Origin: Cycas panzhihuaensis
Lineage: Eukaryota > Plantae > Cycadophyta
NCBI GenBank assembly: GCA_023213395.1
Contig: CM041465.1
Coordinates: 101,997,741 to 102,061,740, forward strand
Direction: 5' to 3'
Length of the DNA stretch: 64,000 nucleotides
Position numbers and translations under genes: made by a program. This document shows positions 20,700 to 63,242 of this stretch, piece by piece. The stretch's first letter is position 1; each line of letters begins with the position of its first letter. A model generated the notes under the pieces. The model was not told the origin of the DNA. It did no database searches and saw nothing but the letters and a program-made list of their open reading frames with translations.

Positions 20700-23258
20700 T
20701 ACAATAGTCATGTGACGCTGCCATATCCTCATAGCGTGTTACCTCTAGGCATGTTTGCTCCCTAGCCTGGAGACCACATCCTTCCTAAGCTCCTCCTCCT
20801 CCTTTGCAAGGTCCTAGCCTTACTCCCCTTATCTCTTTCCCTCCTCTAGGATGGCACCACTATGTGAGTACTGCTATATGAGGATCAAGTGGTTATCTGG
20901 TTGACTAATCGGTCATATCACTCTTGTAGCCTATCCCTCTTACTTAGTAGTAGACTTTACTCTCTCTCCATTGCATGGATCTTCTCCTTGAGCATGATGA
21001 TCCTCATGTTACCCCTAACATCTCTGGCTCCTCCCCCTTAAGCTTCTAGCACCTACACCCAAGCCTACAGTTGGTCTCTCTCAGCTCATAGTTGATCCCT
21101 CTCTTCTTATAACTCTTGGGCCTCTATAGCCTATATATCTCGCATTCGTGTGAGTAGAGCAAAAGCTGAAGTGTGCCTCCCTACTGACCTAGGATCCTTA
21201 CTATCTATGATGAGAAGCCACTTCTTCTCGTATACCCATGGGAAGAGCTCGATGACTACCTACCTTACCAACTCTCCTATGTCATCTCCACTTGTCATCC
21301 ATACACACCAGGGTGTCAGTAAGAGTGTATGCAATAATTCATCAAAACCAAAAATATGTAAAGCATATCAAATAAACTCTGTAAGCATCAAATAACTAAA
21401 TTGAAAGCTAAAGCTAGAGTAGAGGGGAAGTCTCACCTCCTAGGATGCCTAATGCCTCCTTAACTACCACACCTATAACTATAGTCACTATCTCATCCTC
21501 TCCTAGCTCTTCCTCCTCCCCCTGAGGATCTAGTGCATCACCTCCCTTAGCCTCCTCTACTCCAAGGACCTCCTCTCTACCTATGGATAAACCTGTCTCT
21601 ATCACTGTTGTTATCACTACCTCTACCTTTAGGTCATCACCAACAACTCCCTCATCCTCCTCTTTGTCCATTAACTCCTCTCCTAGAGCATCAGTGTCCT
21701 TACCTCCCTCCTCATCACTATGACTTACTGTTATACCAAAAGCCCATGGGTGATTTAGGAAGAGGACTCCTTAGTAAGTGAACTGGTTATGGTCCAACAC
21801 TCCCCCGCGATAAGGAGGCTACCATAGCACATATTACCTATATTATAATTCCACATGAATGGGGGTATATGGGGAACCCGATGGGGAAAGGAGCTTTATC
21901 TAATATTTGTGCAAGGTTTGAACCTTGAACTTGGGCTCTGATACTACTTGTGACTTGCCATTATACCAAAAGCTTATGGGTGATTTAGGAAGAGGACTCC
22001 TTGGCAAGTGAACTAGCCATAGTCCAAAAGTCACTCCCCTAGTGGATAGCGTGATATGAGTCTCTCATATAGTCATCTAATTAGAGGGGCGCAAAATGTC
22101 CAAAATACAATTCAAGAGTGTAGGAGGGCGCAAAATGAAAATCCTCCTTGTCCCACCCTCCTAATCTAGTCTATCTAGGCTATAAGATTGGCCACTATTA
22201 AAGTGGCCCAATTAAAATGCTCCTCCTGCTCACACCTCCTCACTGCCATCATCTATCCCCCTAGTATATCCATGTAATTATATTTCTAAGAGATCTATAA
22301 TAGAATAGTAAACACTATCAAAACATAATAGTAAACATTATCATCTTCCTCACATGAGTAATCCTTGACATAGCAATGGATCTCAGTGGTATATTCCTCC
22401 AATCCCAATGATTCCTACCTGTGAAAAATCTTATAACCTCTCAATGGGTTATATCTATGCTTGAGAGGGTACCTAATATTGCTAGTGTGCCTCTATCTAG
22501 CATCCCCAGAATCCTCCTAACATTGGTAGGAGTGATAGTAACATATCCTACCTAAGGGAGATGGAATGGAATACATGCCTCCTATGATCCTAGTGAGAAA
22601 TGATATCTACTAGGAGGGCCTAGTCTGACACATACTGAGGTGTACAAATGATCTTCTTTAGCCTACACCACCGTAGGATTGCCCTTTCCTATATCTCTAG
22701 TAGGTCAATAAACCCAACCATAGCTCTGCCAATGTTTTTGTGGTTATCAACTGTGATAACAGGCTATAAAAATAAGAAAGCACATTACCAGTTAGCCAAT
22801 CTTCTCTCTGTTAGTCAAAAGTCCTCTCTAACCATAAAAAAATAAGAGAAATTAATATAAATTTCATAGTTTTCTATTTTTATTAAATTGTCCTGGTACT
22901 ACTAATATATTTGCAGTACCGTAAATATATAAGCAAGCCCTACTAACTCTTCCTTAGCCTATAAGGAAGTTTGTGGCACCACGAATAAGTTTTTGGTCCT
23001 GCAGCTTCCCTTGCTAAAAATTTTTAAAAAATAAAAAATAAATAAAATTTTTATTTTTTGTAAATTACAACCAGTTCACTAGGACTAGGGCTTCCTAATA
23101 CCCAAGTCTAACCTCTTTTAGGCCCTTTAATGGGTCCCAGAAAGCCCAATTCACCCACAAAGGGAACTAAACTATAATTAAAAGTACTACTAACTAAAAT
23201 TCAAAATTAAAGGTCAAGACCTAGATTGGCATACCAGATCTAATCTAATCACAGCCAT
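20700..23258 (-). pseudogene. Antisense spliced PMD gene, A unit 2 (exon 1 23235-23258), interrupted by a TRIM; 3' end approximate
   Basis: Homology to the other copies; 24-nt first coding exon followed by a GTATGC donor. Confidence 0.75.
21719..22029 (-). mobile_element. TRIM (terminal-repeat retrotransposon in miniature), 311 bp with 81-bp LTRs (21719-21799, 21949-22029)
   Basis: Two 81-bp direct repeats. On the minus strand TAGTATCAGAGC (the tRNA-iMet PBS TGGTATCAGAGC) follows the 5' LTR and GCGGGGGAG (PPT) precedes the 3' LTR. TSD ATCAC/GTCAC; absent from unit 1. Confidence 0.9.
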
Positions 23259-24384: not shown

Positions 24385-24799
24385 TATGTTGACCCACCTG
24401 AGGTATTTATTACATCTCCTTGTATTAGGGTGATGAGGCATCCCCCTATCCCCTTCTTTCCTATTTCCCATTTATTTTATAGGGATTCTAATCCCATTCT
24501 ATCCTCCAGGACCATATTACCCTCTTAAGTGTCATCTTGGGCAACCCTTAGGTCACGCTTTTGAGGTGTCTCGCATATGTTTTTAGCTTAGGGCTCTATA
24601 CCCTAAGGATAGGTTGAGATATACCTCTCCTTCCACATCCTAACATATGTTTCCTATCCACGTGATCTATCATGGCATTCACTACTCACCTTGGTCATCA
24701 ACATGCATATTTAGATATGTTTTACTAATGATTTATGTTGACAGCATTCACCATCATCCAGTGCTTTTGAGTGATGAGGTTCTACTACTAAGGGGGTAA

Positions 24800-25585
24800 T
24801 GTTTCTTGGCAATCAGGAATGGATAGGGATAGTGCTACATAGGTAAGATCAGGTATACTCTTTCCCCCTTTCTCTTTTTATTATATTTCTTTGATTATTA
24901 TATTATCTAATGATTATATGATTACTTAACTACTTGGATTACCTACCTGATCCCTTTGCCTATGTATGATCCTTGCCTATGATGAACATGACTCTCGTCT
25001 AATGGTGATATTGAGCACCCATGATAAATCCCCTCCTGGTGATTAGTTCCTCACATCCTTCTGTAGCCTAACTTAGTGACTCTTAACTTGTTCATACTCT
25101 TTTATGACATCTTTTCCTCTATTATACCTTGTTTATCCCTTGGTCTACTAAGGGATGTTTATTAAGTTTTTTGCCTATGAAAAGATGCCCCTCATTACTC
25201 ACTCCATATGAGGTTTGCTAATGATTTTTAGTAGTGACTGGTTGGGCCTTTTTGTACCCTAGCATGCATGGTTATCATTGTTACATTGAGTCCTAACCCG
25301 TTTCAATGCATTCCTCATATGTTTCTAGCATTTTTCTATTTGTAGAATGGCCTAGAATTGGCCTACCAATCTTTAGGGATATATTTCAGGCCCTTCAACA
25401 ATCCATCCTATCGTGTTTTGCCCCTTTAATCAATATTTATCATCTATTTGCAAAAATTCTATGAACCTGTTGTCACCTTACCTCCTTTTTTGCCTGCACT
25501 GCTCTGATTATTGCACCCTACTAATATATTAGTGGTGCTACGAATCAATTTGTGGTTTGATTGTTATAAGTTTAAATATATGGTC
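24800..25585 (+). repeat. Family A LTR3, 5' ~790 bp only (truncated at a rearrangement)
   Basis: Matches 2253-3040; preceded by the PPT AAGGGGGTAA. Confidence 0.85.
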
Positions 25586-25660
25586 GTAAGTCCAACTAAT
25601 CACTACTAAAAATCATTAGCAGATCTCATACAGAGTGAGCAATGAGGGGCACCTTTTCAC

Positions 25661-25890
25661 TCCCTTTTATTTTACATCGAGAAGACCCCTTAGAAGATAG
25701 GTAGCTTATGCATGCTTATGAGTTCTCGAACCTGTGTTCTGATCTGTGAATGCTCTTTGAGCATATCTTGGCCACTTTCTTTTCTCCCATTCATTAGCTT
25801 CCATAAATAGTAAGGATAGTTAAGACCTAGTAACCCCCAACGGTATGCTTCCATTAGTGACCATACTGAAGACCCACTAGTAAGGGAAAA
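25661..25890 (+). repeat. Family A LTR 3' end plus PBS fragment, inside the foldback spacer
   Basis: Matches ~5335-5565, including ...CTTCCA-TTAGTGACCATA...CACTAGTAAGGGAAAA. Confidence 0.8.
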
Positions 25891-25893
25891 CAG

Positions 25894-27309
25894 GACCACA
25901 TATTTAAGCTTATAATAGTCACATTGTGAATTGATTCGTAGCACTACTAATATATTAGCATGGCACAATAATTAGAGCATTATAGATAAAAAAGCGGGTG
26001 GGGTGACAATAAGTTCATAAAATTTTGGCTAAAATCTAATAAATAGCAATTAAAAGGGGCAAAACATGATAAGGTAGTCTATTGAAGGGCCTGAAACATA
26101 CCCCTAAATACTGATAGGCTAATTTTGGGTAATTCTATGAATAGAGAAACACCAGAAACATATAAGGAACACATTGAAACAAGTCAAGACTCAATGTAAC
26201 AATGATAAACATGTATGCTAGGGTATGAAAAGGCATAACCAATCACTATTGAAAATCATTAGCAAACCTCACACAGAGTGAGCAATGAGGGGCATCTTTT
26301 CATAGGCAAAAACCTCAATAAATATCCCTTGGCAGACCAAGGGAAAAACAAGGCATAATAGAGGGAAAAGATGTTGCAAAAGAGTATGAACAAGTTAAGA
26401 GTCGCTAAGTTAGGCTATAAAAGTATGTGAGAAACTAATCACTAGGAGGGGATTCTCCATAGGAGCTTAATATCGCCATTGAACCAAAGTCCTAGTTGTC
26501 ATAGGTAGGGATCATACATAGGCAAAGTGATCAGGTAGGTAATCTAAGCAACCAAGCAATGATATAATCATCATGTAATCTAATAATCAAAGAAATGGAA
26601 CAAAAAGAGAAAGGGGAAAAGAGTATACCTAATCTTACCTATGTGGCACTATCCCTATCCATTCCCAGTGGTCGAGAAATACTACCTCCTCCTTGGAAGC
26701 AGAACCTCGTCGCTCAAAAGTGTTGGACAATAGTCATAAGCCCAATAATCAATGCATGCCATGGAGAAACTCTTGACATGTTCGGTTGGGTCTTGCAATG
26801 AGGTACCATTGAATTTGGGCAACTCAAGAGGGTGAGGTGGCAAGTTAGTCTTGAGTGCCTTAATTAATGGTGGGGTTGACCTATAGTCAATGAAAGGATG
26901 AACACTTAGTTAAGCTAAAGGGTCAACCAAAGGCATGGGAGGATGCAAATAGAGATACATGGGTCCTCCTTGAGGGGTTTGGCCATATGAGGGATCAGGA
27001 TTCCCACTTACTTGATGGGCAGGAGACATTCCTATTTGAGGGAAGGCTAGATAGGAGGGAGGTGGATGAGACGATCCCATTCTACCTTGAGGGTATACCC
27101 CTTATTGAGAGGGTATATGAGAGTGAGGGTCATGAGGAGGAACGAATCCTCCTCGGGAAGGTACCATATACAGAGTCGAACATGAAGATAAGGAAAAGAG
27201 ATGAGGTATGGGGTTTTTCCCATATGGGATACCTATAGGAGGTGCAACTCCATAAGGGTGTAATGAATCCACCCCATAAACTAGGAGAGGGTTTTCCCCT
27301 CTATGCCCT
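25894..27309 (-). mobile_element. Inverted, internally deleted family A copy (D), left part: LTR 5' part and PPT (25894-26734) plus gag fragment (26735-27309)
   Basis: Reverse complement of ~24750-25585 and of ~6495-7075; continues on the far side of element B at 45577. Confidence 0.85.
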
Positions 27310-27967
27310 TGGAATCGCACCTCGGGGGGGGTGTCACTAAACCTAGATGAGATCAAGCCAAAATGGCTAACAGTTTTAGTGGTTATGGACCTACAAGAAC
27401 CAAGGAAAGAGATCACCCACAAAGGGCATCTATACATTAGAATACAGGTTTGAGGACCCACAGATGGCACACAAACTCTTTTAGGATAACTCCTCCTCGA
27501 TTTGGAGTAATGGGTGGAAGAGGGATCTCCTCAGTTTCCTAGGTAACCTCAAAAGGGGGCCCTCCCATCCCAGATAGATGAAGGAGGGAGGAAGGGAGTG
27601 AGAGAATACCTCCTCACATGAAGAGGTAATGGAGTAAATGAACCTTAGTAAGAAAGAAAAGAAACTCATATGTAAACCTAAGGTGGCTTGCAATGCAAGT
27701 AGACAAGAGAGTAGCTGGTACCACAATCTAAGCATCAACCACAGGACAGAACCTAAGAGGACTAGCTTAAGGAAATAAAGGAAGAAGGAAAAACCAACCT
27801 TAAGAGGAGGTACTCTCAAGGCACTAGACCCACGGAGGTTCTAGGTATGAAGCATTGATAAAGGATGTTGTCCTATATTTATCTTTCTTTTATTATGTGA
27901 TAGAGAGATATGAGGTGAGAATACCATGCTTATGTATCCAAGAAATGACTTTAAAAGAAAAACAATG

Positions 27968-28050
<83 letters not shown>

Positions 28051-30630
28051 TGTAACCTCGCTCTCTTTATTCTTTCATATACAAGGAATGAGAGCAAGAA
28101 AATTGTTAAGTAGGTAAAAAGCTGAAGCAAGAGATGCAAAGCTATTTTGTGATATCCAATAAGGGCACAAGAGTGTATACGGATGAGTGCCTACCCACTT
28201 TGCCTAAGCCTTGGTAAGGGTGAAGGCCCTTACGAAAGGAGGAAATAAGTGGGTGTGTGCATATCAAAAGAGAAGGCAAGCACCTACCAGTGCAGGCTGA
28301 CTAATGCCCCAACTATATGAATTTAAATAGGCAAGCAGGAGACAACCAGTAAAGTGTAAAACAACATAATCCTTTCTTTTCCTTTTGTCTAGGGTTATAC
28401 AAGAAAAGGGGAGTAAAGGATAAGAGTAAGAAGACTAGGGAGAGAGACGTACCCAGAAATACGATAGTTAGGGTAGCACTACCCTCACCACTCTTGTAGT
28501 CCTTGCTCTTCTCCTTACCGTGAGTGGCACAACAAAAAGGATGTGAGCAAAAAGGAGGGGGCTTCCTTACCTTCCCCCAAAACCAAAGTAAAAGGAAAAT
28601 ATGAAGAAAGGAAATGGAAACACTAAAATGACTTTACTTTGAAATTTTTAAAGTGTTAGAAAAAACAACTGCTAAGTGAAAGAGGAGCATACCTAGGATG
28701 AAGATCCCTGCTTGCTCCAAATGCAAGGAAACCTATACAAACTAAGCTCATCATTTTCCAAGGGGCACACAACATATGTAGGGACAAGAATGTGCAAGGA
28801 AATATGTCAAAATGTATGTATCTCTTTTGAAAGAAAAAAAAAATCAATATTAATATTGCTTCTTATTATGCATATATTATTAAACATGTGATGTGGGAGA
28901 AGGGGTTGAGAAGGAGAGAAACAAGTAGCCTCAGAATGGCTAACCCTCCAAATCTAAAATGCTCCATACTATCCCCAAGCACCAAGACAAAGGGTAAAGA
29001 TAGTGAACCAACCCGATAACAAGTGCAAATAGGTTTTTGTAAAAGTAGACAAAAGCAGTAAAAGGGGTTGCAAAAGTTATAAATATTGCAAGAGTTATAA
29101 AGTGCAACTTTTGTCGGCTTTTTACAAGAGTTAACCTAAAACACAAAAAGGGTATAGAGTAGGGATAAAACCCTAGCCATGTAGGATCTTTGATGGCTAG
29201 TTGCAAACATTACAATGGGCTACCTACACAGCCACCAGCAGAGATCTGCTCCTCAATGGCTCTCCAAGAAATCAAAGAAGGTATGGAGAAGGAGTGGAAA
29301 GGACAAAAGGGGGTTATCCTTGAGGAGAAGGTGTGTTGGATGTAGGACCCTACCTATGGCTCCTTTCGCTCTCCATATAACCCTCTTCCCTACTGCCTCC
29401 TTGAAAAACCCAAACAGAACCAAGAGGGAGAAAGTGGACAGGCCAATAGGAGGAAGGGTTTTCCTCTCGATACAATATAGAAAAGAAGAAAGAAACGTAT
29501 TGCAAGGAGTACTAGTAGAAGAGTACCTATGTTGTTCAAAAAGAAAATCAAAGGATTGATCTGAGAGTACCTGGTAAAGGTAGATCTGAAGTAGATCTAC
29601 CTAGAAAACTAGGTGAAGAAGAGGGTCCTCTAAGGTTTGCTAGAGAAAACCCTTGTAGTGTACCGAATGGAGATCAAAACCTTGAGAAAAAGGAGACCTC
29701 GAGCTTGGTGAGGCATTTGGAGTGCGATCTCTCTTTAGCTAGCCTTATTACATACCTGCGACCTGTGTTTCCTAAGCTATAAGGGACTGGTGGTTAGGCT
29801 ATCAGTAAGGTGCAGTAGAGCTTGAGTCTATTATAGGGCATTTTTGAAGAGGAGAGTGGTGAAAAGTGAATGAGAAGAAGTGAAAATAGGGTGGATTTTA
29901 GGTTTTTAAACCCAACCCTATCTTAACGAGTGATTAAGATTCTCTATGGGTAGGAGTTAAGTCACTGCCATGTGGCAATTTCGTAATAAATACGAAATTA
30001 GCTACAGCTAGTTTAAAAAATAGTTATGAATAGTCACCCTACGGTTAACTTAACAGTACCATAGAGTTTGCAGTAGTACCACAAAGTTTACTACAGTGTA
30101 GGTAAAACCTAGATAAAAATAAGAGTGGGGGAGCCTGAAAGCTCCCAAAAAGAGGGGATCCTAGACCCTAAGGGGCAAGTTATAGTATCTAGGTAACAAG
30201 GAGGTTATGAGACCTAGCAGGACCACAACAAGCAGGAAGAAGATGGTCAACAGCTCCCAAAAAGTGATAAAAGGTGCACATGGTGTGACAATTGGGCCTA
30301 GGCGAGGTGCTAGGGGCTATGTCGCACTAATGAGTCATGTGATATGTGCTGTGAAAGCTAAAAGGTACTTGGGGACATTGTGGAGACGATGGCAGAGGTT
30401 TGTGGAGTACCATAGGATGTGTATCCTAAGATCATGATAGGCTAAAAAGATATTGGGATGCAATATGTTTAAGCAACAAATGCATAGTAATCTACAGTCA
30501 ATCAATTATAATGTAATGCAGGTAAAGTACTTCAATTTACCTTTCTAAAATTGACAAAAGTGAGGGTAGAAGTTTACTTGAACTTACCTAAGTCAGATTG
30601 CACATGTCCAGTCCCAGTAGTTAGGAAACA
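27310..30630 (-). repeat. Element B 3' LTR; PPT at 30631-30643 (GCGAAGGGGGCAA on the minus strand)
   Basis: Colinear with 42303-45576; plus-strand ends TGGAATCGCACC...GGAAACA. Confidence 0.9.
27970..28049. repeat. Compound (TC)n(TA)n microsatellite in the B 3' LTR
   Basis: Directly visible; the other LTR has only a short (TC)n at ~42970-42985. Confidence 0.95.
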
Positions 30631-31547: not shown

Positions 31548-32304
31548 GGTAGGGAGATGAATGTCTTGGTCAGATAGTGGAGGAAGAAAAGTGACGATGG
31601 GGTCAATAAGCAAAGAAAGACATGAGAGGAAGTGATAGGCCTATGAAGAACTCGGAAGGTTATAGACGAGGATCACGAAGAACCAAAGAGCCCTGAAGGG
31701 AGGCCACTCAAGGACGAGGAGAACAACTTGACAGAAGGGAAGGAAATGGCAGCAAAAAGGCCCCTTTGTGGTCCCAAAGGTCGCTTAAAGGGATGAGCTA
31801 AGGTCTTGAATGGGGGAGGCACTTCCTTTGAGAGCCTTAAAGGCTCAGATAGGCAACAAAAATAAATTTAAGATGGCAAAACAAGCTAAAGGAGTATAAA
31901 CATGGGTATGTTTTGGAGTGGTGCAAAAATTGAGACAGAAGGGGTCTACCAGAGACTAAAGGGGTTTGCGAGAGACTGAAGGGGTCATCATAAATGCACC
32001 AAAGAGGCTGAAAAAGGAGGCCATAGAGGCAAAATAGTGGACAGACCCAAAAGGCAAAGGTAACAAGGGTGAAAAGATGGTCGCAGGGGCTATTGCAGTA
32101 GAAAGAAAGGAGACGATGCCTGTCGGGGCCTCCATGCATATAAAGGAAGAAGGGCAAAAACGAAGTTCATTTTCACAGGCTCATGATCAATCTAGAGCCC
32201 TTTCTCTTATGCAGCAGAGCACCGCCTGACTTTTGAGGCATGTAGTAGGATATTCAACTGTCAGATTGAGGAGCAAAGACAGCCAACTTGACGAGGATAA
32301 TGAG

Positions 32305-34750
32305 ATGGCGATGGTGAGGCTAAATCCAGTGAGTGGATTGCCCCCTACCCATTCCATTTCATCAATTTTATTTAATGGATTTTTACATTTTTTTCAGTTA
32401 GTTTTTTGCCCCTTAAGGGCAATTTAGAACCCTCTAGAGCCTTATTTGGGCCCAGAGAGGGGGAGGACTAGGTCATTAGCCCTGGTCCTAGTGATCCTAG
32501 TTGTTGCCTACTCAGACAAAAAATTTAGATTTTTTGGGCACTCCCCCCCTTTTTGTGAGAGGTAGCGAGGGCCCCGTGGCAAAGATCGTGGTGCCATAGA
32601 GTTTTCCACAGGGCCACCAAGAGAACACTAAAATCTTAGTAGGGCTCATGTCAAACTCCATGGTACCATAGAGTTTGACACAGGGCAGAGATACATAAGC
32701 AGAAAAAAGAAGAAAGGGGGCCCAAGAAGGTGCCAGACTCAGCCCAAAAGGCTAAGGGGCAACCAGGCATGACATAGGGTGCATTAGGACTAACTTCAGA
32801 ATGATTTTGTAGGCGATTACTATCGTGGACAACCATGAGAACATAAGAGTTTCCATGATGAGCTTCACAGAGATGTTGTTGCGAGGAGACAGGCAAACAC
32901 TAGGGTGATGTGGGTTGCTGAAGATCATCAAGACCCCACAGTACACATCAGATTAGTGTCTTCTAGTGGATATACTCTTATATTAGGATCGTAGGTGACA
33001 TGTCTTCTACCTTCCCCAGGTAGGAGACATCACCATCACACTAGGGGATGTCAAGAGGATCCTAGCAGTGCCAGCAGGAGGAGCACCAGCATCACTAGGG
33101 ACACTGCCTAATATAGATGCTACACACACAGAGGTAGCCACATACTCCACTGGCCAGGGTAGGTAGGACTGGTGAGGGATATCGGTCCAAACGATGGTGA
33201 AGTCACGAATTCCTCAACTGAGGAAACTTATTACATTGGGCATTATGTTCTGGATTTCCTGAAAATATAATTACAGGGACATACCCAGTGGATGGATGGA
33301 CACGGTGAGGAGATGTGAGGTCAGGGAGAGATTGGCTTGGGCTGCCTTGATAATAGTAAACATAGTTGCGCAATTGGATGCTGTCAGGGTGGTAGGGAGA
33401 GGAGGATTTTCCTATTATACTCTATTATAGTTCTAGTTTTTTGATCATTTTGGGGCAGTAGCACCATGAGGAGGGCTTCATCCTATCTCAGCACAAATTC
33501 CCATGGTGCATAGGTGGCATACTCAGTTTAGGGGGACTGAGGATCAGGCACACATCAGGCAGTCGGTCGAAGTGATGTCACTAGACCTCCTTACTCTAGC
33601 AGACTACATAGCATATCTGTATAGAGGAGTGCATTGGGACAGTGACGATGTAGAGGGAGAGGTAGGAGGTGGTCCTAGAAATGGTAGCGATGATGATGGA
33701 GATGATGGGGCAGGCCCATGAGGAGCTACAGGTCCATCAAGAGCTACATTAGGAGAGGTAGGTTTATTACAGGCTGTAGGAGGAGAGGCAGGTCCTTCAG
33801 GAACTGCATGAGGTGATAGGCCACCCCGCACACTAGCACAGAGATTAAGGGTGGTCGGCAGAGCTCTGGCGGCAGTAGCAGTAGAGGGAGGAGAAGACAC
33901 CCCGACAGTCTAGGAGGTAGGCGAGGTGGTACCAAAGGCTAAGGAAGAGGTACCAGCAATCGAAGGAGGTCTCATGGAGGAGGCGGTCATTTGCATCGAG
34001 GAGCTAGACATCCTAGGAGATAAGACACTACCCATTCTTGACGCCTTTCGACCACTAAGTACTTAGATAGTTTGCTTTGATTTGGTTTTAAGATTTTGAT
34101 ATATACATATAAAAACTAACACATGATGTATTTGACTTAGCAGGAGCAGCAGAGATGGGAAGATTGGTGGAGGTAATAGTTTGGGAGCTATTCCCCTAGG
34201 TGTATGCAGAGGAACAACCTCCTATCCTAGCTGGAGAGGAGCCTCAATTAGTAGGGACATAGATAGTGATATTCACCCTACTAATCAAGGCCAGGGATAT
34301 ATGGGTAGCAGAGTCCTAGGAGCACTAGGTAGTATAGCTACAGAGGGAACTAGATAGGATCTGCATGGAGAAGGACCAGGCGATCACAAAGAGGGATACT
34401 TTACAAGGCTGAGTTTAGGCATTAGAGGCTCAGGGTGGAGGAGTAGCAGGGGATGATGCAGAGAGCCATATCAAGATAATTGTGCTAGAGGAGAGGCTCT
34501 AAGGAGTGGAGGAGAAGACGAATTGTATCCAGATGTGATACGGTCAACTGGTAAAGTAGATGGTTACAAGGTCATCACGGAGCAGGACGTAGACCCACAT
34601 GGCAATGGTGACCCCGAGGAGGCCTCGAGATGAGGGGAGCGAAGTAGAGAGCTCACAGCAGTGGTGGAGAAGCCTAGGAGGTATGTGGTCTCCTGGGGTG
34701 AGGTCATGCTGACCAAGAGATGATACCCCCTAAGAGTAGGGATGCCATAG
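32305..34750 (+). pseudogene. Antisense spliced PMD gene of element B: exon 1 32305-32328, intron 1 32329-32812, exon 2 32813-34019, intron 2 34020-34143, exon 3 from 34144; 3' end approximate
   Basis: MAMVRLNP|GTGAGT ... CTAAC..TTTTGTAG|AITIVDNHEN...HVFYLPQVGDITITLGDVKRIL, spliced in frame. The second intron has a CTAAC branch point and TTAGCAG acceptor; its donor has decayed to ATAAGA. TATAAA lies at ~32139. Confidence 0.82.
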
Positions 34751-42142: not shown

Positions 42143-42290
42143 ACAAGTGCCTCCTAAAGATTAGAAGAAAAAGGAGATAGTAAGATGCAAGTATTAGGGG
42201 TTGCCCAATAAATCGAGGAGAGCTACCGAAAAGGAGGTAGCACCAACAGATTAGGGAGAAAGGATTAATCCCTTACTAGTGAGTCCTTAG

Positions 42291-42302
42291 TATGGTCGCC
42301 AG
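42291..42302 (-). other. PBS CTGGCGACCATA (probably tRNA-Arg)
   Basis: Begins 1 nt after the LTR terminal CA; TGG start complementary to tRNA CCA. Confidence 0.8.
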
Positions 42303-45300
42303 TGGAATCGCACCTCTTGGGGGAGGGGTCATTAAACTTGGATGAGATCGAGCCAAAATGGCTAACAGTTTTCATGGCTATGGACCTACGAGAACTAGTG
42401 AAAGAGATCACCCACAAAGGGCATTCGTGCATTAGAACACAGGTTCAAGGACCCACAAATGGCGCACAAACTCCTTTAGGGTAACTCCTCCTAGATTTGG
42501 AGTAACAGGTGGAAGAGGGATTTACTCGATTTCCTGAGTAACCTCAAAAGGGGGCCCTCCCATCTTGGATGGTTGAAGGAGGGAGGCAGGGAGTGAGAGA
42601 ATACCTCCTCATGTGAAGAGGTAACCGAGGAAATAAACCTTAGTAAGAAAGGAGAGAAACTCACATGTAAGCTTAAGGCAGCTTGTAACGTGAGTAGACA
42701 AGAGAGCGATTGGTTCCGCAAACTAAGCATTAACCAAAGGACGGAACCTAAGAGGTCTAACTTAGGGAAACAAAGGAAGAAGGAAAAAACAACCTTAAGA
42801 GGAGGTACTCTCAAGGCACTAGACCCAAGGAGGTTCTAGGTATAAAGGGTTAACAAAGGATGTTGTCCTATGTTTATCTTTCTTTTATTGTGTGATAGAG
42901 AGATATGAGGTGAGAATATCATGCTTGTGTATGCAAGAAATGATTTTAAAAGAAAATTAATGTATTCTTTCTCTCTCTCTCTCTAGATGTAACCTTGCTC
43001 TCTTTATTCTTTTATATGCAAGGAAAGAGAGCAAGTAAATTGCTAAGTAGGCAAAAAGCTGAAGCAAGAGATGCAAAGCTATTTTGTGATATGCAATAAG
43101 GGGACAAGAGTGTGTATAGATGAGTGCCTACCCACCTTACCTAAGCCTTGGTAAGGGTGAAGGCCCTTATAAAAGGAGTAAACAAGTGGGTGTGTGTGCG
43201 TCAAAAGAGAAGACAAGCACCTACCAGTGTGGGCTGACTAAATCCCCAACTATATGAATTTAAAGGGGCAAGCAAGAGATAACCAGTAAAGTGTAAAACA
43301 ATGTAATCCTTTCTTTTCCTTTTGTCTAGGGGTATATAACAAAAGGGGAGTAAAGGATAAGAGTAAGAAGACTAGGGAGAGAGACATACCCAGAAATACG
43401 ATGGTTAGGGTAGTGCTACCCTCACCACTCTCGCAATCCTTGGTCTTCTCGTTGTCACATGTGGTGCAACAGAAAGGATGCTCTTCTACTTTCCAGGAGG
43501 GGGCTTCCTTACCTTCCCCCAAAACTGGAACAAAAGGAAAATATGAAGAAAGAAAATGGAAACACTAAAATGACTTTACTTTACAATTTTTAAAGTGTTA
43601 GAAAAAGCAACTGCTAAGTGAAAGAGCAACATACCTGGGATGAAGATCCTTGCTTGCTCCAAATGCAAGGAAACTTGTACAAACTAAGCTCGTCATTTCC
43701 CAAGGGGCACCCAACATATGCGGGGACAAGTATGTGCAAGGAAATATGGCAAAATGTGTGTATCTCTTTTGAAAGAAAAAAAGCATTCAATGTTAATATT
43801 GCTTCTTATTATACATATATTGTTGAACATGTGATGTGAGAGAAGGGGGGTGAAAAGGAGAGAAATAGGTAGCCTCATAATGGCTAACCCTCCAAATCTA
43901 AAATGCTCCATGCTATCCCCAAGCACCAAGACAAAGGGTAAAGAGAGTGAACCAACCTGATAATAAGTGCAAACAGGTTTCTATGAAAGTAGACAAAAGC
44001 GGTAAAAGGGGTTACAAAAGTTGCAAATATTGCAAGAGTTACAAAGTGCAACTTTTGTAGATTTTTTATAAGAGTTAACCCAAAAAATGAAAGGGGTATG
44101 GAGTAGGGTTGAAACCTTAGCCATGTAGGATCTTTGATGGCTAGTTGCAAATGTAGCAATGGGCTACCTATGCTGCCACCAGTAGAGATCTTCTCCTCAA
44201 TGGCTCTCTACGAAATCAAGGGAGGTATGGAGAAGGAGAGAGGAGGAGAGAAGGGGGTTGCCCTTGAGGAGAAGGCATGTTGGGTGTAGGACCCCACCTA
44301 TAGCTCCTTTCCCACTTCATATAACCCTCTTCCCTGTTGCCTCCTTGAAGAACCCAAAGAGAACCAAGAAGGGGGAAGTGGATAGGCCAACAGGAGGGAG
44401 GGTTTACCTCCTGATACAATAGAGAAAAGAAGAAAGAAGCTCACTGCAAGGAGCACTAGTAGAAGAGTACCTATGTTATTCAAAAAGGAAATCAAAGGAT
44501 TGATCTAAGAGTACCTAGTAAAGGTAGATCTGAAGTAGATCTACCTAACAAACTAGGTGGAGAAGAGGGTGCTTTGGGATTTGTTGGAGGAAACCCTTGC
44601 AGTGTGGCGAATGGAGACCAAAACCTTGAGCAAAAGGAGACCTAAAGCTTGGTGAGCCGTTTAGAGCGTGATCTTTCTTCAGCCAACCTTGTTGCAGACC
44701 TGCGACCTATATTTCCTTAGCTGTAAGGGGCTAGTAGCTAGGTTTTCAGTTAGGTATAGTAGAGCTTAAGTATGTTATAGGGCATTTTTAGAGAAGAGAG
44801 TAGTGAAAATTGAATAAGAAGAAGTGGAAATGGGGTGGATTTTAGGTTTTTAAACCCAGCCCTAGTTTAACAAGCTATTAGGATTTGCTATGGGTGGGAT
44901 TTGAGTTACTACCATGTGGCAATTTCGTAATAAATATGAAATTAGCTACAAGTAGTTTAAAAAATAGTTATGAGCAGTCACCCCATAATTAACTTAGTAG
45001 TATCACGGAGTTTGTAGATCTACCATAAAGTTTACCACAGTGTAGGCAAAACCCAGATAAAAACAAGAGTGGGGGATCCTAGAAGCTCCCAAAAAGAGGG
45101 GATCCTAGACCCTAAGGTGCAAGCTAGAGTATCTAAGTAACAAGGAGGTTGCGAGACCTAATAGGACTACAACAAGTAGGAAAAGGATGGTCAACGACTC
45201 CTAAAAAGTGACAAAAGGTACACATGATGCGATGACTAGGCCTAGGCGAGGTGCTAGGGGCTATGTCATACTAATGAGTCATGCGGTATGGGTTGTAGAG

Positions 45301-45576
45301 GCCAAAAGGTACTTGGGGACATCATGGAGATGATGGCGGTGGGTTGTGGAGCACCATGGGATGTGTATCTCGAGATTGTCATAGGCTAAAAAGATGTTAG
45401 GATGCAAAATGGTCAAGCAACAAATGCATAGTGATTATGTAGTCAATCAATCAAAATACAATACAGGTAAAATGCTTCAATTCACCTTTTCTAAAACTGA
45501 CAAGGATGAGGGTAGAAGCATACCTAATCTTACCTGAGTTGGATTACTCGTGTCTATTCCTGGTAGCCAGGAAACA
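42303..45576 (-). repeat. Element B 5' LTR (~3274 bp)
   Basis: Colinear with 27310-30630. Confidence 0.9.
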
Positions 45577-49201: not shown

Positions 49202-50016
49202 TGAAACGCTCGCTACGGGGCGGTGATCCTATGTCTAGCAAAAGGATATAAGAGTACACTATGCTAACTAAGCTAGGCAATGAGGACCTCACCTCGCAGG
49301 GCATCCATGCGCCAGAGCGCGGATTCGGGACTGCAAGGTGCCTGGTTGCTTCCAGGTAGCCGTGCAAAACAAGGCCTTCCTACCCTTCGTATGGCCGGGA
49401 AGGAGAGAGAATGCCTTGCGCGTTGCATCTTCTCAAGGCAATGAGAAGGCAACGAATGGGAGGACAACTAACTAAGGTGTAGGTAAATGCAGGAAAAGGG
49501 ACGCAATGAGGGTAACTCGACTGCAACATGAGCGAACTATCTATGCTAAGCTATGCTAGATAAAATGAGAAACAATGTAAAAGATGAATACGCTTTCCCT
49601 TTTCCTTTATATTCCTTTACAATTTTCTAACTACTCAAGCAAATGCATGTAAGATAATAATGTAAAAGGGGATATACAGGAAGCGAGGGGAATACCTGGA
49701 TCCAGCTCCTAAATGGAGGTACGGCTCATCTCTCTAAGTCCTGATCCTTCCTTCTCTGTTCGTCGTGCATGCAATGCCGATCGGTGGTAATTACCGGAAG
49801 CGATGGACGAAGGGTCTACTTACCTCCCCTTAAGCATGCAAAATCAAATAAAGCAGAAAGAAACGAAAAAAGCTTGAAACTAAAGAAAGAAAGGCACTAC
49901 GTGGAACTAACCTGCAATGGGTTCGTCCCGTGTGTCGCTCCACCAATGCGTGATCCTGTAAACGGGTAAGAAGGACACCTTCCTCTCGAAAGAGAGGCCA
50001 CAACATATACCAAGAA

Positions 50017-50047
<31 letters not shown>

Positions 50048-51783
50048 AATCAAATGAAACTAAGATCTAAGCTAAGCATCGGAATATAACAAAATGAAAT
50101 AGCAACATATAAGAAATGCTCTCACCACCATGTACCACGAAAACACCTGAAAGGGAAAGGAGTATAGCCTCAGGATGGCTAACTCACCCACAGGAGACCT
50201 CCATGGAACTCGGGAAGGAAAACTAGTTGGCAATAAGGTAGTGAAGCAACAAATCTGTAACAAGGAAAAAAGAAGGACGCAACAAACTGGGGTTTACGTA
50301 GGGTCTAATACCAACAGGTGAGACTCCAATCAATGACGTAGTGACGAGCGCCTATGCTAATTGGAATACCCTAACTAAATCCCCTAAACTCCCTTAGCTC
50401 GTTCTCTAAGAAAGCGCAGATGGCAAAGGGAAAGAGGACAAGGGACGGGACCCTTAGGGAGAAGGACAGCAATAGGGGACGGAACCCTGCTTACCTCTCT
50501 CAAATCCTCGTATGTACTCCTTTACACTGGCTAACTAAGGAAAGAGTGAAAGGGATAGTTTAATGGAAAATGGAGGGGCTCCAAAGAAACAACGGGAAGA
50601 TACCCCTAATCTAGAGCAAGACCATGAGGAGAACTGTAGCTAACTAGGATCATATTCATTGAGAAATAAAAGAAATAGAAAAGAAAGTGATTGCAGGCAA
50701 AAAGCAAGAAGTACCTTGTATGGGGAAGATCAAGCATGCACTTTGCTACTGGGAACAGCAGTAATAAACAACATATAGGGACTGATCATAAGTGGTTCTT
50801 GCAAGAGTGTGGATGAAGAAAACTCCTTACAAGTTTGGAGCCTTGGAAGTTGGCTCTTGAAGCAGCTTTTGGGTGAAGAAGTCCCTTGAATCCTTGAGCA
50901 CCTGCAAAGAAGAATGGAGCTTGCTGTGGAGAGCTGTAGGGGACAGCAATGGCCCTGCAAGTCTAGCTGATGGTAGCCCACTTCACCCTTTGTCCAATTG
51001 CTATGTATGTGGTTTTTTTTTTTCTGTGTCTTTTTTTGTGTGAAAGCTAGAAGTTCTCCTTAGAAGTTTAAAAATTGGCAAAAAGATCTAAAAAATGGGG
51101 AGTAAAATCCCCTTTATCCCCCCTGTTCATGGCAGGTGAACGTTGGGGATGTCAGGGCGACTCGAATCAATCAATGCCACGTGGCAGTTTCGCGGAAAAA
51201 CGGAAACTGTCACATGGTTCTCTTTTTTATTAAATTTCAAACAGTCGTACCGCGGCAAACTCTGCGGTACCGCTAAGTTTATAGCGGTATCAGGTTGGAA
51301 ACAAAAAAAGAGAAAAATGAGCAGAAATATCAGGTTTTGGAGCAAAAATCAAGGCTAAACATAAGTTAGAGCGGTGAGGAATGCCTGTGCAATGGGCAAG
51401 TACCCAAAATAATGCAAAGAGTCCTAACTAAGGATTAAATCAGGCTTAAGAAGGACTACAACATAAGCAACACGTTGTAACGAGAGCAAATAGGACTGAC
51501 GAAAACATCCCGAGAGACCGTGGAGACAATGTGGGTGGCTGTGCGCCATACGGGGTGTAGCATTCGCTACGGAATGCCCCTGCTGTGAGTCGTCATAGGC
51601 TGATGGTGTGCCGTAAGCACATGCATTATGAGCAAGTAGAAAAGTAATGCGTGCAAGCAGCCATATGTCAAGCATCCTACTCTAAATAACCTCAATCAAG
51701 CATGGGCAAGAAAAGTTAAGAAAGTATACCTGAACAAACCTACATCGATGCGTCTCGAGTCCATTCCCAGTAGCTGGGAAACA
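49202..51783 (-). repeat. Element C 3' LTR (~2582 bp); PPT at 51784-51795
   Basis: Plus strand TGAAACGCTCG...GGGAAACA, followed by CTACCCCCTTGG. Confidence 0.88.
51175..51186. promoter_or_regulatory. Palindromic G-box TGCCACGTGGCA in LTR U3
   Basis: Perfect 12-bp palindrome; deaminated TGCCATGTGGCA at the equivalent place in the B LTR (29966-29977). Confidence 0.55.
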
Positions 51784-51865
51784 CTACCCCCTTGGCAGTA
51801 GAGCCTCACTGCTCGGAAGCGTAACGTGATGGCGAATACTGATAATCAAAGATATGAGTAGTACA

Positions 51866-51868
<3 letters not shown>

Positions 51869-51938
<70 letters not shown>
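51869..51938. repeat. (TA)n microsatellite
   Basis: Directly visible. Confidence 0.95.
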
Positions 51939-51941
<3 letters not shown>

Positions 51942-52199
51942 CAATAAAGAGTAGCACGTGGACCAAGGGCGTAGGCGAGTGTCGTGGCAGAACGCATGGA
52001 CAAGGGAGATGGAGACAAGGACAATGTAGGGGCTGCCTACGCGTCGTCTAACATCGACCTATAACTGAAATAAGCAAGTAAAAGGGGATGCCCCCGTTGC
52101 CGAAGTATAACACGAAGTAGGAGGGCATCTAGCAAATAGAGCAAGCAATCTAAGTAATAGCAACCAGAGACTTGGGCACGGGCTAGCCAGGTAAGCCTC

Positions 52200-52616
52200 A
52201 GGGGCGATTGTCAAGAAGAGGGAGGCGATGCTCAAGGATGAGGCGGACGAGGTCACACCGGCATTGAGGTGCCTAGGGATATGCTGAATATCCACTGACG
52301 AGAAACAAGCTAGAAGAGACCTGGTAACAGACGCGAGGGTTCTCAGGTGAGGGCATCGCACCTGGTAGACCTAGGTGAGATGGGACACCACAACCTGAGA
52401 ATAGCAAAACAACACGATAGACCCGCGATGGAAATGAAGACCATCAGTAAGGGCTTCAATAACGGCCGTGTACTTGGCTTCGTTATTGGTAGCCTCAGGA
52501 AGAAAGACTCTGGAATACAAGAAATCGTGTCCGGAGGGGCTGCGAAGAATCCACACAGCGGTGAAAGGTCGAGGGTTGCCGCGACTTCCACCATTGGTAA
52601 AAATGAGAAGGGACAT
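52200..52616 (-). pseudogene. Stand-alone aRH ORF of element C; 3' end approximate
   Basis: MSLLIFTNGGSRGNP...EATNNEAKYTAVIEAL...CYSQVVV..*VYQVRCPHL...VDIQHIPRHLNA (ORFs 52371-52616 and 52059-52361). Confidence 0.88.
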
Positions 52617-53139
52617 GTCTGAATACTAAGCTCTGGTAAACAAATAACGGTGAAAGTAAAAGAAAGATTCAAATGGCAAGCAAAAAGGTGGCCAAGAAGG
52701 GTAGGAGGACCTAGTAATAAGGTTACCCGAGAACGAAAGCAAGCAGTCTGGCCACTGGCTGAGAGTGGGCGGAGAAAAGATGCCCTAGAGTGCCAAAGGT
52801 TACTTTGCGAAGCAAAGCATGCTCCCGGACAGGAGAGCATTCCCTTTGGAGACCCCAGGAGCGAGAAAGGACTGCGGAAACGAGTCCAGGGCAGCGAAAT
52901 GAGCCAAATGAGTATAAACTCGGGCATGCACGGGAGTAGCGCACAAAGCGATGCAGAAGGGCCCTGGCAAAAGTGCAATAATGAGGCGCCATAAATGCCC
53001 TTGCAAGAGAAGGCAAAAAGGACGTCCATGGAGCACAATGGGTGAAAGGGCTAGAAGGGAAAGGCTATCAGGGGAATGAGATGGTCCCAACGACTGTCAC
53101 GGAGCCAAAAACAGAAGAAGTGCCCGTCGGGGCCCCCAG

Positions 53140-53149
53140 TTATATAAGG
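53140..53149 (+). promoter_or_regulatory. TATA box of the antisense PMD gene
   Basis: TATATAAGG ~165 nt upstream of the exon 1 ATG. B has TATAAAGG at the same spacing; A has AATAAAAGG on the minus strand at ~875-883. Confidence 0.55.
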
Positions 53150-53307
53150 AAAACAAATGAAAATCAGATTCATTTTCACCGACTCTCGTGCGAAACTAGA
53201 GCCTTTTCCTTACGATGCGGAGCACTACCCAACTTTGGAGGCATGTAGGAGACAATCCGACCGTTGGATCCGAGCATAGAGACAATCGTTATGATCACAG
53301 AGACGAG

Positions 53308-55730
53308 ATGCCGATGGTCAGGCCAGATCCGGTGAGTGGATCTCACGAAACCCTTGCCATTTCGAAGTTCAAAATTTACTACTTTTTAGTTAATTTTATG
53401 TATTTTTTATGCCCCTTATGGGCAATTAGATGCCTCTCAGAGTCTGAATCGGACCCGGAAAGAGGCGGACACAGGCATTAGGGAGCCTAGTCCTGGGTTC
53501 TACCTGGGTCCACCACAAAATTTTTAGATTTTCTAGGTCAAACCCCCTTTGGGGTTGCCATTCTGCATCAAGCCCAAGATCGCGCAGACCGTGATCTTGG
53601 CCGCGGGATCGCTACAGGAGAGTGATCGCCATAGGACCCACTCCAATTTAGCTGCACCGCCAAATTTGGAGCCAGACGAGGCGTAAAACCGTAAAAACCG
53701 TAAAAGGGCCAAACAAATTTCAAAATCAAAAAGGAAAATCAGACAGATACCACGCATTTACGATCGCTAGAGGTCGAATTTTAATCGTGATGATCAGAGG
53801 CGCTATCGCCGGATAACCGCGAAAACGTCGGTATGCCGATGCTGAGCTACTTAGAGATGGTGTCCCAAGAGGACAAGGCGACTCTAAAGAGGTGTGGCCT
53901 ATACAAGGCCCTCAAGACCCCCCAGTTCACGTTAGACTAGAGGCTTCCGGTTGACATCGTGTCACACTGGGACATGAGGAGGCATGTATTTCACTTGCCT
54001 CCGATAGGCGATATCACAATCACCCCAGGAGATATCAGTGCATCCCGGGGTACCAAATGATGTGGGAGACCAGTGAGGCTGGGAGCGCTACCTAGCACCA
54101 AGGCAAGACATGTGGAGGTAGCCTGGGCCTCACTGTGGATCGACAGTGGGAGCGAGGGAGCTCTCTGCATCGTACTCATGTCCAGGATTCCTCGGGCAAG
54201 GAATTTGATACTATTATGCATTCTGTTCCAGATTTCCCAGAAACAGAACTACAGGGAGATCCCCAGAGGATGGGTGGACGCAGCGCGTTGGTGTGAGGCT
54301 GGCGAGAGGATGGACTGGGCCACTCTAGTTGCGGTGAACCTCGTCGCCCAGCTAGATACCATTCAGAGATCTAGCAGAGGAGGGTTTTCTTACAGCATGC
54401 TATTACAGTGCTGGTTTTTTTATCACTTTGCGGCAGTGGCACCGGCAAGGGGGCCATTCCCCATAGCAGGGTGGGCCCCGATGGTCCACAGGTGGCAGAC
54501 GAGGCTCCGGGGGATAGAGGACCAGGCTCATGTTCATCGGTTGGTCGATGCGACATCACTCGACCTCCTCACTCTGACAGACTATATCGCAGAGCCCTAC
54601 AAAGCAGTGAGGTGGGAGAGTGACAATGGAGCGGGTGGAGCAGGAGTGCCCATCAACGACGATGACGATGACAACAGTGATGACGATGGGGGCAACGACG
54701 GTGATGATGGGGGAGATGGGGTTGTCCCATCATGACTTGCAGGGGAGGCAGGTCCATCACAGTCGACAGAGGGAGTAGCAGGACCATTTGGGACTGCCGA
54801 AGAAGGGGCAGGCCCATAAGGAGCTACCGAGGCGAGTAGGGTGCCCGAGACCAGGGGTCGCAGACTATAGATCGTGAGGAGATCCGGAGATATGAGGGTC
54901 GATCCAGTCCCTACTAGAAACGAGGTTGAGGCAAAGGACGTACCTGAGGATGAGGTACCTGCAGCTGGTGGAGGGCCAGGAGATGAGGATGTTGCCCGAG
55001 CAGAGGAGCCGGCGGCCACGGCAGGTAAGACCTAACCGTTTCCTTAGTCGTTTGACATCTAGATAGACACTTGATTTCATTTTATTATGGTATGCAGTAA
55101 GGATATACACTAACACATGGCATGTTGCATTGACAGGAGTAGCAGAGGTCTGGAGACTAGTGGAGGCCATGGTGAGGGAGATGATCCCTCAGGTCTACGT
55201 AGAGGGACAACCGCCCATCTAGGCAGAGGATGCACCCAGATCAGCAGGATCCCACATGCAGGCATTCGTCCCACTAGTGAGGGTGAGAGACATCTGGGCT
55301 GCAGAGACCCAGGAGCACATGGCATTCTAGGGACAGCTGCAGCGAGAGGTCGACACGGCCAGGGGCAAGCAGGATGAGCTGCGCAGACGAGTCCAGGCCT
55401 TAGAGGCTCAGAGCAGACTAGGAGGAGATGCAGGGAGCAGCATCTGCCTAGCAGTCCTAGAGGAGCACCTTAAGGTGACAGAGGAGAAGTTTAGGGCTAT
55501 GGAGGAGGGACTCCGAGGCAAGTGGGATCGCATCCAGATCTGATATGACCAGCTAGTAGCGCAGATGGTCTCGAGGTCAGGCAGGAGTCGGACCCATACA
55601 CATACAGCGACTACTACCCCGAGACGGCCTCAGGACGAGGGGAGCAAGGCGGGCAGAGGCCTGTGAGGAGCCTCGGAGGGATGTGGTCCCAGAGAGGGAT
55701 CACACGCACGGGATGGTACCCGTGATCGTG
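53308..55730 (+). pseudogene. Antisense spliced PMD (MAIN/MAIL-like) gene of element C: exon 1 53308-53331, intron 1 53332-~53797, exon 2 ~53798-55024, intron 2 55025-55136, exon 3 from 55137 (predicted coiled coil); 3' end approximate
   Basis: SHWDMRRHVFHLPPIGDITITPGDI, MDWATLVAVNLVAQL, GGFSYSMLLQCWFFYHF. CAG|GTAAGA...CACTAAC...TGACAG|G preserves frame into QLQREVDTARGKQDELRRRVQALEAQ. Confidence 0.88.

Positions 55731-55868: not shown

Positions 55869-55931
<63 letters not shown>
55869..55931. repeat. (TA)n microsatellite between the convergent pol and PMD 3' ends
   Basis: Directly visible. Confidence 0.95.
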
Positions 55932-63062: not shown

Positions 63063-63242
63063 GCAATGCCTTTGCGAGTGTTGTTAGAAGAAATAAAAAA
63101 GAAAAAAAGGAAAATCATGCAAGCACGTTGGGGGTTTTCCAAATGAAAACACAGAATAAGAAACTACCTAGAGGCAAGAACACCAACGAAAAGGGGAAGC
63201 GAATTTAGCTCCCTTATCTTGGCGCCTCAAAGATGGTCGCGT

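Follow-up and report, generated by a model that had tools for sequence, protein, structure and literature searches.

The stretch of DNA analysed here, hereafter called the window, comprises 64 kb of contig CM041465.1 of the cycad Cycas panzhihuaensis (assembly GCA_023213395.1). Self-BLAST, Pfam scans and boundary sequences resolve it into nested Tat-type Ty3/Gypsy retrotransposons of three families, A, B and C. Each family carries, between its integrase and its 3′ long terminal repeat (LTR), a sense-strand open reading frame (ORF) with a weak RVT_3 signal together with an antisense PMD gene. An array of short palindromic units lies in the U3 part of the LTRs and has a counterpart in intron 1 of the PMD gene. 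The two arrays are a real, non-random and conserved pair of cis-elements, and it is plausible, by analogy with known transposon systems, that they are targeted by the element's own PMD protein.

In the LTR of element C the array occupies positions 51244–51293 and consists of GTCGTACCGC, the spacer GGCAAACTCT, the core GCGGTACCGC (51264–51273), the spacer TAAGTTTATA and GCGGTATCAG. An earlier note on this DNA had read positions 51247–51291 as GTACCGC-ggcaaactct-GCGGTACCGC-taagtttata-GCGGTATC, in agreement with the sequence. The repeat unit is 20 bp long and is made up of the 10-bp palindromic core GCGGTACCGC and a 10-bp spacer, in tandem. The pattern CCGC-N10-GCGG is found twice in the 64 kb, both times within this array, where 0.02 matches are expected, and none of 100 shuffled sequences contains two or more of them. 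The central 24 bases of the array form the palindrome AAACT-N2-core-N2-AGTTT. The arrays are closed by an inverted last spacer, and because of this inversion the last unit is a palindrome of 24–30 bp, which takes the form AAACT-N2-core-N2-AGTTT in B and C and TAATATATT-core-AATATATTA in A.

Contigs from four organisms were aligned to the window, and shared copies were counted at 85% or more. The family of element C is very abundant in these contigs and keeps the core with its CpGs intact. Many copies contain one more unit of exactly 20 bp, located either before position 51247 (...AACAGTC-GTACCGC-GGTAAACTTC-GCG) or behind position 51273/4 (GGTAAACTCC-GCGGTACCGC-TTAGTTTACC). Since the copies differ by 20-bp units, the feature is best described as a tandem core-plus-spacer repeat of variable number. 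The period of 20 bp, which the earlier note had equated with about two helical turns, equals the length of the tandemly duplicated unit, so that helical phase need not be selected.

All seven LTR copies in the window possess a U3 array, and the decayed versions proposed for the A and B LTRs are each found at the aligned U3 position. In B, the array of the 3′ LTR (30033–30102) has the cores ACAGTACCAT (30053) and GTAGTACCAC (30073), and that of the 5′ LTR (44985–45047) has the core GTAGTATCAC at 44997. In A, the array of LTR1 (2973–3017), read on the − strand, is ACACCAC-N10-ATGACACCAC-TAATATATTA-GTAGGGC. LTR2 (14065–14124) contains the extra unit TAATATATTA-GCGGTACTGA-TAATATATTA, and the array of LTR3 (25518–25556) has an inverted copy at 25905–25975 in A′, an inverted family-A fragment that lies beyond this third A LTR. 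The distance into U3, given in the earlier note as 500–750 bp for the A and B versions, measures 494–538 bp in C, 533–591 bp in B and 686–765 bp in A. The description of the A and B versions as deaminated is equally well founded, as 20 of the 24 differences from the core GCGGTACCGC are G>A or C>T changes, an excess that fits decay by deamination.

Scans of the window that tolerate such decay return mainly the array sites. The core RYRRTAYYRY is found ten times, six of these on array sites, and pairs of purine/pyrimidine-coded cores exactly 20 bp apart are found 12 times, nine of these on array sites. The 24-bp model AAACT-N2-RYRGTACYRY-N2-AGTTT gives five matches, with 0.07 expected, which are located in the two B LTRs, twice in the B intron and in the C LTR, and nowhere else in the window. 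The array is non-random, palindromic and rich in CpG.

Two rearrangement breakpoints of family A (25577–25585 and 25894–25902) are situated within about 10 bp of an array end. They correspond to a 2.3-kb internal deletion of LTR3 and to the truncation of the inverted A′ copy, and the inverted repeat formed by 24764–25585 and 25894–26720 results from both. The palindromic array may act as a hot spot for breakage or template switching, or the proximity may be a coincidence.

Between LTRs of different families BLAST aligns only the terminal 25 bp and the (TA)n runs. Homology of the U3 parts across families was found using a transition-tolerant alignment, the significance of which was judged against shuffles. 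The best collinear block contains, in this order, the array, a G-box (in B and C) and a TATA-like box. The pair C–B3 scores 108 (shuffle mean 45, standard deviation 5) and the pairs B3–A1 and B3–A2 score 76–82 (shuffle mean 47, standard deviation 6), while the score of C–B5 is marginal relative to shuffles and the alignment of C with A2 is not significant. The G-box, a known type of site, is perfect in C (GCCACGTGGC, 51176–51185), about 60 bp to the promoter side of the array. It has the counterpart GCCATGTGGC at the aligned place in B, and none is seen in the aligned U3 block of A. The TATA-like box of the C LTR (GATAAAGG, 51111–51118, − strand) corresponds in the alignment to TTTAAAAACC of B and TATAAAAACC of A. 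It is found 85–190 bp downstream of the array on the sense strand of the element, with the G-box in between in B and C. Judged by this spacing, the array is probably part of the LTR promoter region and takes the usual place of an upstream promoter element, with the start of transcription being predicted from the sequence of the TATA-like box. An inverted repeat, CAGTTTC-N11-GAAACTG (51185–51209), which includes the E2F-like sequence TTTCGCGG, is present between the G-box and the array.

The second array resides in the PMD gene. In element C this gene has a TATA box (TTATATAAGG, 53140–53149, + strand) about 165 bp before its ATG, and the corresponding box of B (CATATAAAGG) is at 32137–32146. 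Exon 1 of C (53308–53331, + strand) comprises eight codons followed by GTGAGT, and an eight-codon first exon with a GT donor is common to B (32305–32328), A and C. Intron 1 of C extends over 53332–53799 (+ strand) and the main PMD ORF over 54073–54735 (+ strand, antisense to gag-pol). The exons and ORFs were searched separately, and the main ORF matches Pfam entry PF10536 with an E-value of 3.5e-07 and 30.2 bits, below the cut-off of 34.9. The PMD copies of the window are broken according to their ORF list; in C this is seen from a stop in the upstream exon 2.

The earlier note had the array recurring in PMD intron 1 of each family, which is true for A and B and holds weakly for C. The intron of A3 keeps an exact 20-bp register over five units (22893–22982, − strand), which include TTATATATTT-ACGGTACTGC-AAATATATTA-GTAGTACCAG, that of A2 has a palindrome (11566–11605, − strand; TAATATATTT-GTAATGCTAC-AAATATATTA) and that of A1 retains a remnant at 411–433 with half of the palindrome deleted. 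The B array (32589–32689) consists of five to six units at steps of 20, 31, 20 and 20 bp, with the palindrome TCAAACTCC-ATGGTACCAT-AGAGTTTGA at 32649–32680 and the upstream unit GTGGTGCCAT-AGAGTTT. In C we find a quasi-array (53582–53680) of core-like 10-mers at 53582, 53603, 53624, 53651 and 53671, that is, at steps of 21, 21, 27 and 20 bp. Its best unit, CTCCAATTTA-GCTGCACCGC-CAAATTTGGA (53641–53670), has imperfect inverted arms, and the core GCTGCACCGC (53651–53660) matches in eight of ten positions. This C instance is missed by both unbiased scans of the window, that for tolerant cores and that for pairs spaced by 20 bp. Alignment of the introns nevertheless places one palindrome at the homologous position of intron 1 in A, B and C. 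Contig depth over 53522–53812 in C drops to 100–1000 times below that of the flanks, so that most copies of the family do not share this stretch at 85% or more. The intron array is, as judged from these alignments, conserved in presence and place and not in sequence.

Other parts of intron 1 are better preserved. Its proximal part (53332–53560) contains blocks, such as CCCCTTnnGGGCAA and CCTGGTCCTAG, that are common to A, B and C and show stronger conservation than a large part of the coding sequence. A short hairpin holds the 5′ splice site of the intron in its loop, and its arms vary by family while remaining complementary: AGATCC-GGTGAGT-GGATCT in C (53325–53343), AATCCA-GTGAG-TGGATT in B (32322–32341) and AGACCCAATC-TAGTATGCT-GATCTGGGTCT in A (about 685–724, − strand).

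Within each family, 65–105 bp of the LTR and of intron 1 align in the same orientation, and this segment includes the palindromes as well as a purine-rich flank. In B it is about 100 bp long and ends in CTAAGGGGCAA. LTR and intron match clearly in A and in B but only weakly in C, with z-scores of 5.3–8.5 within a family and 1.1–4.5 across families, and the likeness does not reach the G-box or TATA part of the LTR. The intron spacers of A and B had been said to resemble those of their own LTR. This is borne out by TAATATATTA in A and by the 15-mer GTACCATAGAGTTTG in B, with the correction that the B type (AAACTnn / nnAGTTT), being also present in the C LTR, is no property of B alone. In C the arms of intron and LTR do not match, and the arms are family-specific for A versus B/C. 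As the likeness includes the non-palindromic flank, descent or sequence exchange explains much of what looks like co-evolution of the spacers. We read this as a segment that was probably duplicated between U3 and intron before the families split, and that exchange or recopying has kept alike within families. Co-selection of LTR and intron binding sites is possible, and not required.

The same observations could also belong to a functionless quasi-palindromic minisatellite that is kept by slippage and template-switch 'palindrome correction', that was copied once from U3 to the intron or in the reverse direction, and that is homogenised by recombination or by template switching of reverse transcriptase. 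The inclusion of flank in the 65–105 bp of paralogy is in agreement with this, as are the unstable number of units, the rapid change of the intron array region, which is the fastest-changing part of the cassette, and the two family-A breakpoints at the array. A neutral repeat does not, however, account well for a 10-bp core and two positions that persist in three families with LTRs that BLAST cannot align, for a CpG-intact core that is kept in the contigs of four organisms, or for a motif that is essentially confined to the array sites within the window. We consider a neutral origin and maintenance to be unlikely.

Symmetry was counted over eight units in register, giving 120 cells. Across the centre 80.8% of the cells pair, compared with 65% in shuffles, none of 500 of which attains this value, and 30–42% in slid registers, and 11 of the 15 pairs change on both sides, so that the arms covary. 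Symmetric changes at CpGs could stem from parallel deamination, but the exchange of AAACT/AGTTT arms for ATATA/TATAT arms involves transversions, which parallel deamination does not explain. Among the most palindromic 40-mers of the window outside microsatellites (at least 15 of 20 pairs), four of seven are array units.

Such palindromes might instead function as nucleic acid structures, namely as hairpins or cruciforms in the genomic RNA, in the intron of the PMD pre-mRNA or in the DNA of reverse transcription, with control of splicing, RNA dimerization or packaging, or supply of small RNAs from a hairpin as possible roles. The hairpins of all units are more stable than those of shuffles (z-scores of −1.5 to −5.3), the whole C array folds into one long imperfect hairpin and the folding energies of the B intron are −20.6 kcal/mol for one strand and −22.4 kcal/mol for the other. 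Together with arms that covary and stay complementary, and with the second covarying hairpin around the splice donor of PMD intron 1, this fits a structural role. The folding scores do not discriminate, however, because any palindrome folds well, whether it acts as RNA or as DNA. The mismatches among the 120 cells are split evenly between G:T (10) and A:C (11). Neither strand thus tolerates wobble pairs in the manner of RNA, which weakly favours a palindrome that is read at the DNA level. The internal units of the LTR arrays moreover have direct and not inverted spacers, and a location in U3, immediately before a TATA-like box, is what is usually seen for DNA elements. A role as a folded nucleic acid appears improbable to us.

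Taken together, the array pair is probably a duplicated, protein-binding cis-regulatory dyad module of the LTR promoter with a paralogue in the PMD gene, an assignment that we make from sequence and with moderate confidence. The array would act at the DNA level as the binding site of a dimeric, sequence-specific protein. In the LTR it would serve as an upstream element of the promoter. The paralogous copy is found some 0.5 kb past the TATA box of the PMD gene, in the distal half of intron 1, such that one factor could act both on the promoter of the LTR and on the cassette with the accessory gene. The sequence of the arrays, their position, periodicity and palindromic symmetry, the paralogy and the variation in unit number are observed here, and from these we infer the binding of a protein, the transcription start sites and a regulatory effect.

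Several points weigh against this assignment. The units that entered the symmetry count were picked for their palindromic look, and the core-1 units of A and the second unit of the B LTR have direct rather than inverted spacers. The proximal half of intron 1 is conserved across the families, while the distal half, which holds the array, is the least conserved part of the cassette when B is compared with C, and the array stretch of the C intron is not common to most copies at 85% or more. A search of sequencing runs gave no RNA run that contains this DNA, and transcription starts are placed by TATA-like boxes only. We know of no plant transcription-factor motif that fits the array cleanly. Its GTAC centre recalls the SBP proteins, the consensus of which we take to be CGTAC; the flanks in the array (GGTACC) differ from this. 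Finally, the E2F-like sequence TTTCGCGG (51188–51195) beside the G-box is private to this copy of element C. Nearly all contigs read A at 51195, and because the G at this position is confined to this copy we reject an E2F site.

As to the protein that would bind the module, the element's own PMD protein and a host factor seem to us about equally likely. The earlier note had suggested a dimer-binding, CpG-containing site through which the PMD protein or a host factor could co-regulate the LTR and the PMD gene. Of this proposal, a non-random, palindromic and CpG-rich site with arms specific to A versus B/C stands. Its retention in U3 and in PMD intron 1, each time at a fixed position, is likewise supported for three families with otherwise hardly alignable LTRs. 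The PMD protein is a candidate binder, and a host factor fits the site as well.

A host transcription factor would read the array as a U3 enhancer repeat, with the intron copy being a duplicated piece of it. In A, B and C the array indeed precedes a TATA-like box, and in B and C it also precedes the G-box. Its units vary in number, a trait of known U3 enhancer repeats, and its core is conserved across the families. The intron copy could then be an intronic enhancer of PMD or an upstream element of an internal sense-strand promoter. The latter variant is suggested by the orientation relative to the sense strand of the element, which the LTR and intron copies share, and by the A/T-rich block that follows each copy on that strand (51111–51118 in the LTR; about 53515–53545 and 53404–53418 in the intron). 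Such a promoter would serve the free-standing RNase H ORF about 0.5–0.6 kb downstream of the intron copy. On the other hand, we know of no host-factor motif that matches cleanly, the G-box and TATA part falls outside the likeness between LTR and intron, and a factor that reads the core alone would have no need for self-complementary arms that differ between families. An enhancer that is bound by a host factor is possible, at less than even odds.

The alternative is a retrotransposon-borne counterpart of the VANC proteins, in which the antisense spliced PMD gene would encode a dimeric DNA-binding protein that recognizes the 24–30-bp palindromes of the LTR and of intron 1 of its gene, acts in anti-silencing or auto-regulation and co-evolves with the arms. 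The arrays occupy non-coding stretches of the element that also encodes PMD, among them the intron of PMD itself, they gain and lose units in steps of 20 bp, and the LTR and intron arms are alike within A and within B. These traits are published hallmarks of VANC targets (PMC5735166). In a preprint, PMD-C proteins are described on promoter motifs, their fold is likened to DUF1985 and the idea of transposon-encoded PMD anti-silencers is put forward (bioRxiv 10.1101/2024.09.27.615353). The identity of the core in three families would nevertheless fit a conserved host factor equally well. The likeness within families extends into the non-palindromic flank, which points to duplication or exchange rather than to co-selection. 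In addition, the B type of arm is also found in the C LTR, the arms of the C intron and the C LTR mismatch, the Arabidopsis DOWN/M1M motif is absent from the arrays and the PMD copies in the window are broken. The preprint states that direct DNA binding by PMD is undemonstrated and places the PMDs of retrotransposons in clade A and not in clade C. We offer this analogy tentatively, as a plausible reading that the published work on VANC and PMD-C makes credible, at clearly less than even odds.

The remaining features of the window define the elements that carry the arrays. The 3′ LTR of element C (49202–51784, − strand), delimited by self-BLAST and boundary sequences, has TG...CA ends, and the complement of the polypurine tract, CTACCCCCTTGG, starts directly after it at 51785. 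The 5′ LTR starts at 63243 on the − strand and runs past the end of the window. Gag, reverse transcriptase and integrase extend from 62281 down to 56786 (− strand), in this order according to Pfam. The LTRs of element B are found at 27310–30630 and 42303–45576 (− strand). Family A, on the + strand, has the arrangement LTR-internal-LTR-internal-LTR, with LTRs at about 2253–5566 and 13380–16649 and a deleted one at 24790–25891. The primer-binding site of B, beside its 5′ LTR (42290–42302), reads TGGCGACCATAC on the sense strand, while the corresponding place in C (63220–63242) reads ACGCGACCATC, its first bases being mutated. Long (TA)n microsatellites are seen in element C between the polypurine tract and the RNase H ORF (51862–51940), in the LTR (49995–50040) and near the end of PMD (55870–55930).

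RVT_3 denotes an archaeal-type RNase H, and the match of the C ORF at 52059–52361 (E-value 0.033) is below the Pfam cut-off. A further ORF of 231 amino acids in C (52343–53038, − strand) has no Pfam match. The C copy of the RNase H-like gene is split by a frameshift. A search of 5.8 billion proteins yielded only one or two relatives for the RNase H-like ORF and for the PMD ORF, all of them from Logan. Neither the 24-bp palindrome nor the PMD ORF gave a match in scans of viral contigs. In metagenomes, GCGGTACCGC-N10-GCGGTACCGC matches 31 contigs, 30 of which are GC-rich and apparently bacterial; they have no BLAST likeness to the window and were set aside as irrelevant. Four of these metagenome contigs (L008, L019, L023 and L024; 59–60% GC, presumably bacterial) contain tandem 20-bp repeats of the form GCGGTACCGC-CTAACGACTC, and the shared core looks like a coincidence of sequence.

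For PMD-carrying retrotransposons the locus provides a short candidate target, a 24–30-bp palindrome with the core GCGGTACCGC, which is present in very many copies in no fewer than four of the sampled organisms. Three diverged families have this candidate both at the LTR promoter and within the PMD gene, which makes the question of what PMD does in such elements directly testable. Should the PMD protein prove to be a counterpart of VANC, it would protect its family from silencing by DNA methylation or Polycomb, or would switch the family on, the arms would co-evolve by family, and the widespread PMD genes of plant retrotransposons would gain both a function and a target site. If instead a host factor binds, the array would be a conserved promoter element in a group of retrotransposons that accounts for a considerable share of a large plant genome.

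Tandem enhancer repeats in U3 are known from plant retrotransposons, such as the BII boxes of Tnt1 and the 13-bp motif of Tto1. The arrays described here resemble these in that short tandem units of variable copy number lie upstream of a TATA box, and differ from them in the palindromic unit and in the paralogous copy in the intron of an accessory gene.

Similar in organization are Tat/Retand elements with an antisense accessory gene that carries a TRP28 domain and for which a regulatory role has been proposed (PMC11963269, PMC7264820). They are likewise non-chromoviruses in which an antisense accessory gene with its own promoter lies between pol and the 3′ LTR, and tandem repeats occur in the accessory-gene region. 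Their accessory ORF is TRP28 and not PMD, and the survey places such elements only in eudicots and monocots. A motif shared by LTR and accessory gene is not reported in the portions of these papers drawn on here (PMC11963269, PMC7264820).

In Arabidopsis, the PMD-C proteins MAIL1, MAIN and MAIL2 occupy specific promoter motifs, one of which, M2M, is palindromic, and the host PMD-C proteins oppose Polycomb silencing at their motifs, as described in the preprint (bioRxiv 10.1101/2024.09.27.615353). The association of a PMD gene with a specific motif near promoters is common to that system and, for putative promoters, to the present elements. The Arabidopsis PMD-C genes are, however, host genes, and the preprint assigns the PMDs of retrotransposons to clade A. 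The DOWN/M1M motif is AACT-N-CRTGYCGTTT (S7 Table of PMC7156037). The array partly shares its flavour, with AAACT ... GTTT arms around a GT(G/A)CC centre, but the arms are spaced by 14 nt in the array and by 8 nt in DOWN/M1M. Allowing up to three mismatches, DOWN/M1M has two matches in the window (9.9 expected), none of them at the arrays, and membership of the arrays in this motif family is rejected.

A further close parallel is found in VANC and VANDAL21 (Hosaka et al. 2017, PMC5735166). There the targets of VANC form tandem arrays in non-coding DNA of the transposon, the intron of VANC itself included, and these arrays gain and lose units and diverge in a concerted manner (PMC5735166). Here too the element encodes a candidate regulator, the PMD gene found in each of the three families. 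Dense arrays of one short motif occupy the terminal regions and an intron of the regulator gene (weakly so in the C intron), and these arrays grow and shrink in tandem, with units that diverge together and differ between families. The host element, in contrast, is an LTR retrotransposon and not a DNA transposon of the Mutator-like element (MULE) type, and the candidate protein has a PMD domain rather than DUF1985; a kinship between the two comes from the literature only, the PMD fold having been reported to resemble the DUF1985 of VANC in the preprint, the authors of which raise transposon-encoded PMDs as possible anti-silencers (bioRxiv 10.1101/2024.09.27.615353). The motif also differs, being a palindrome in a strict 20-bp register and not a 9-mer arrayed in one orientation, and its core is common to all three families.

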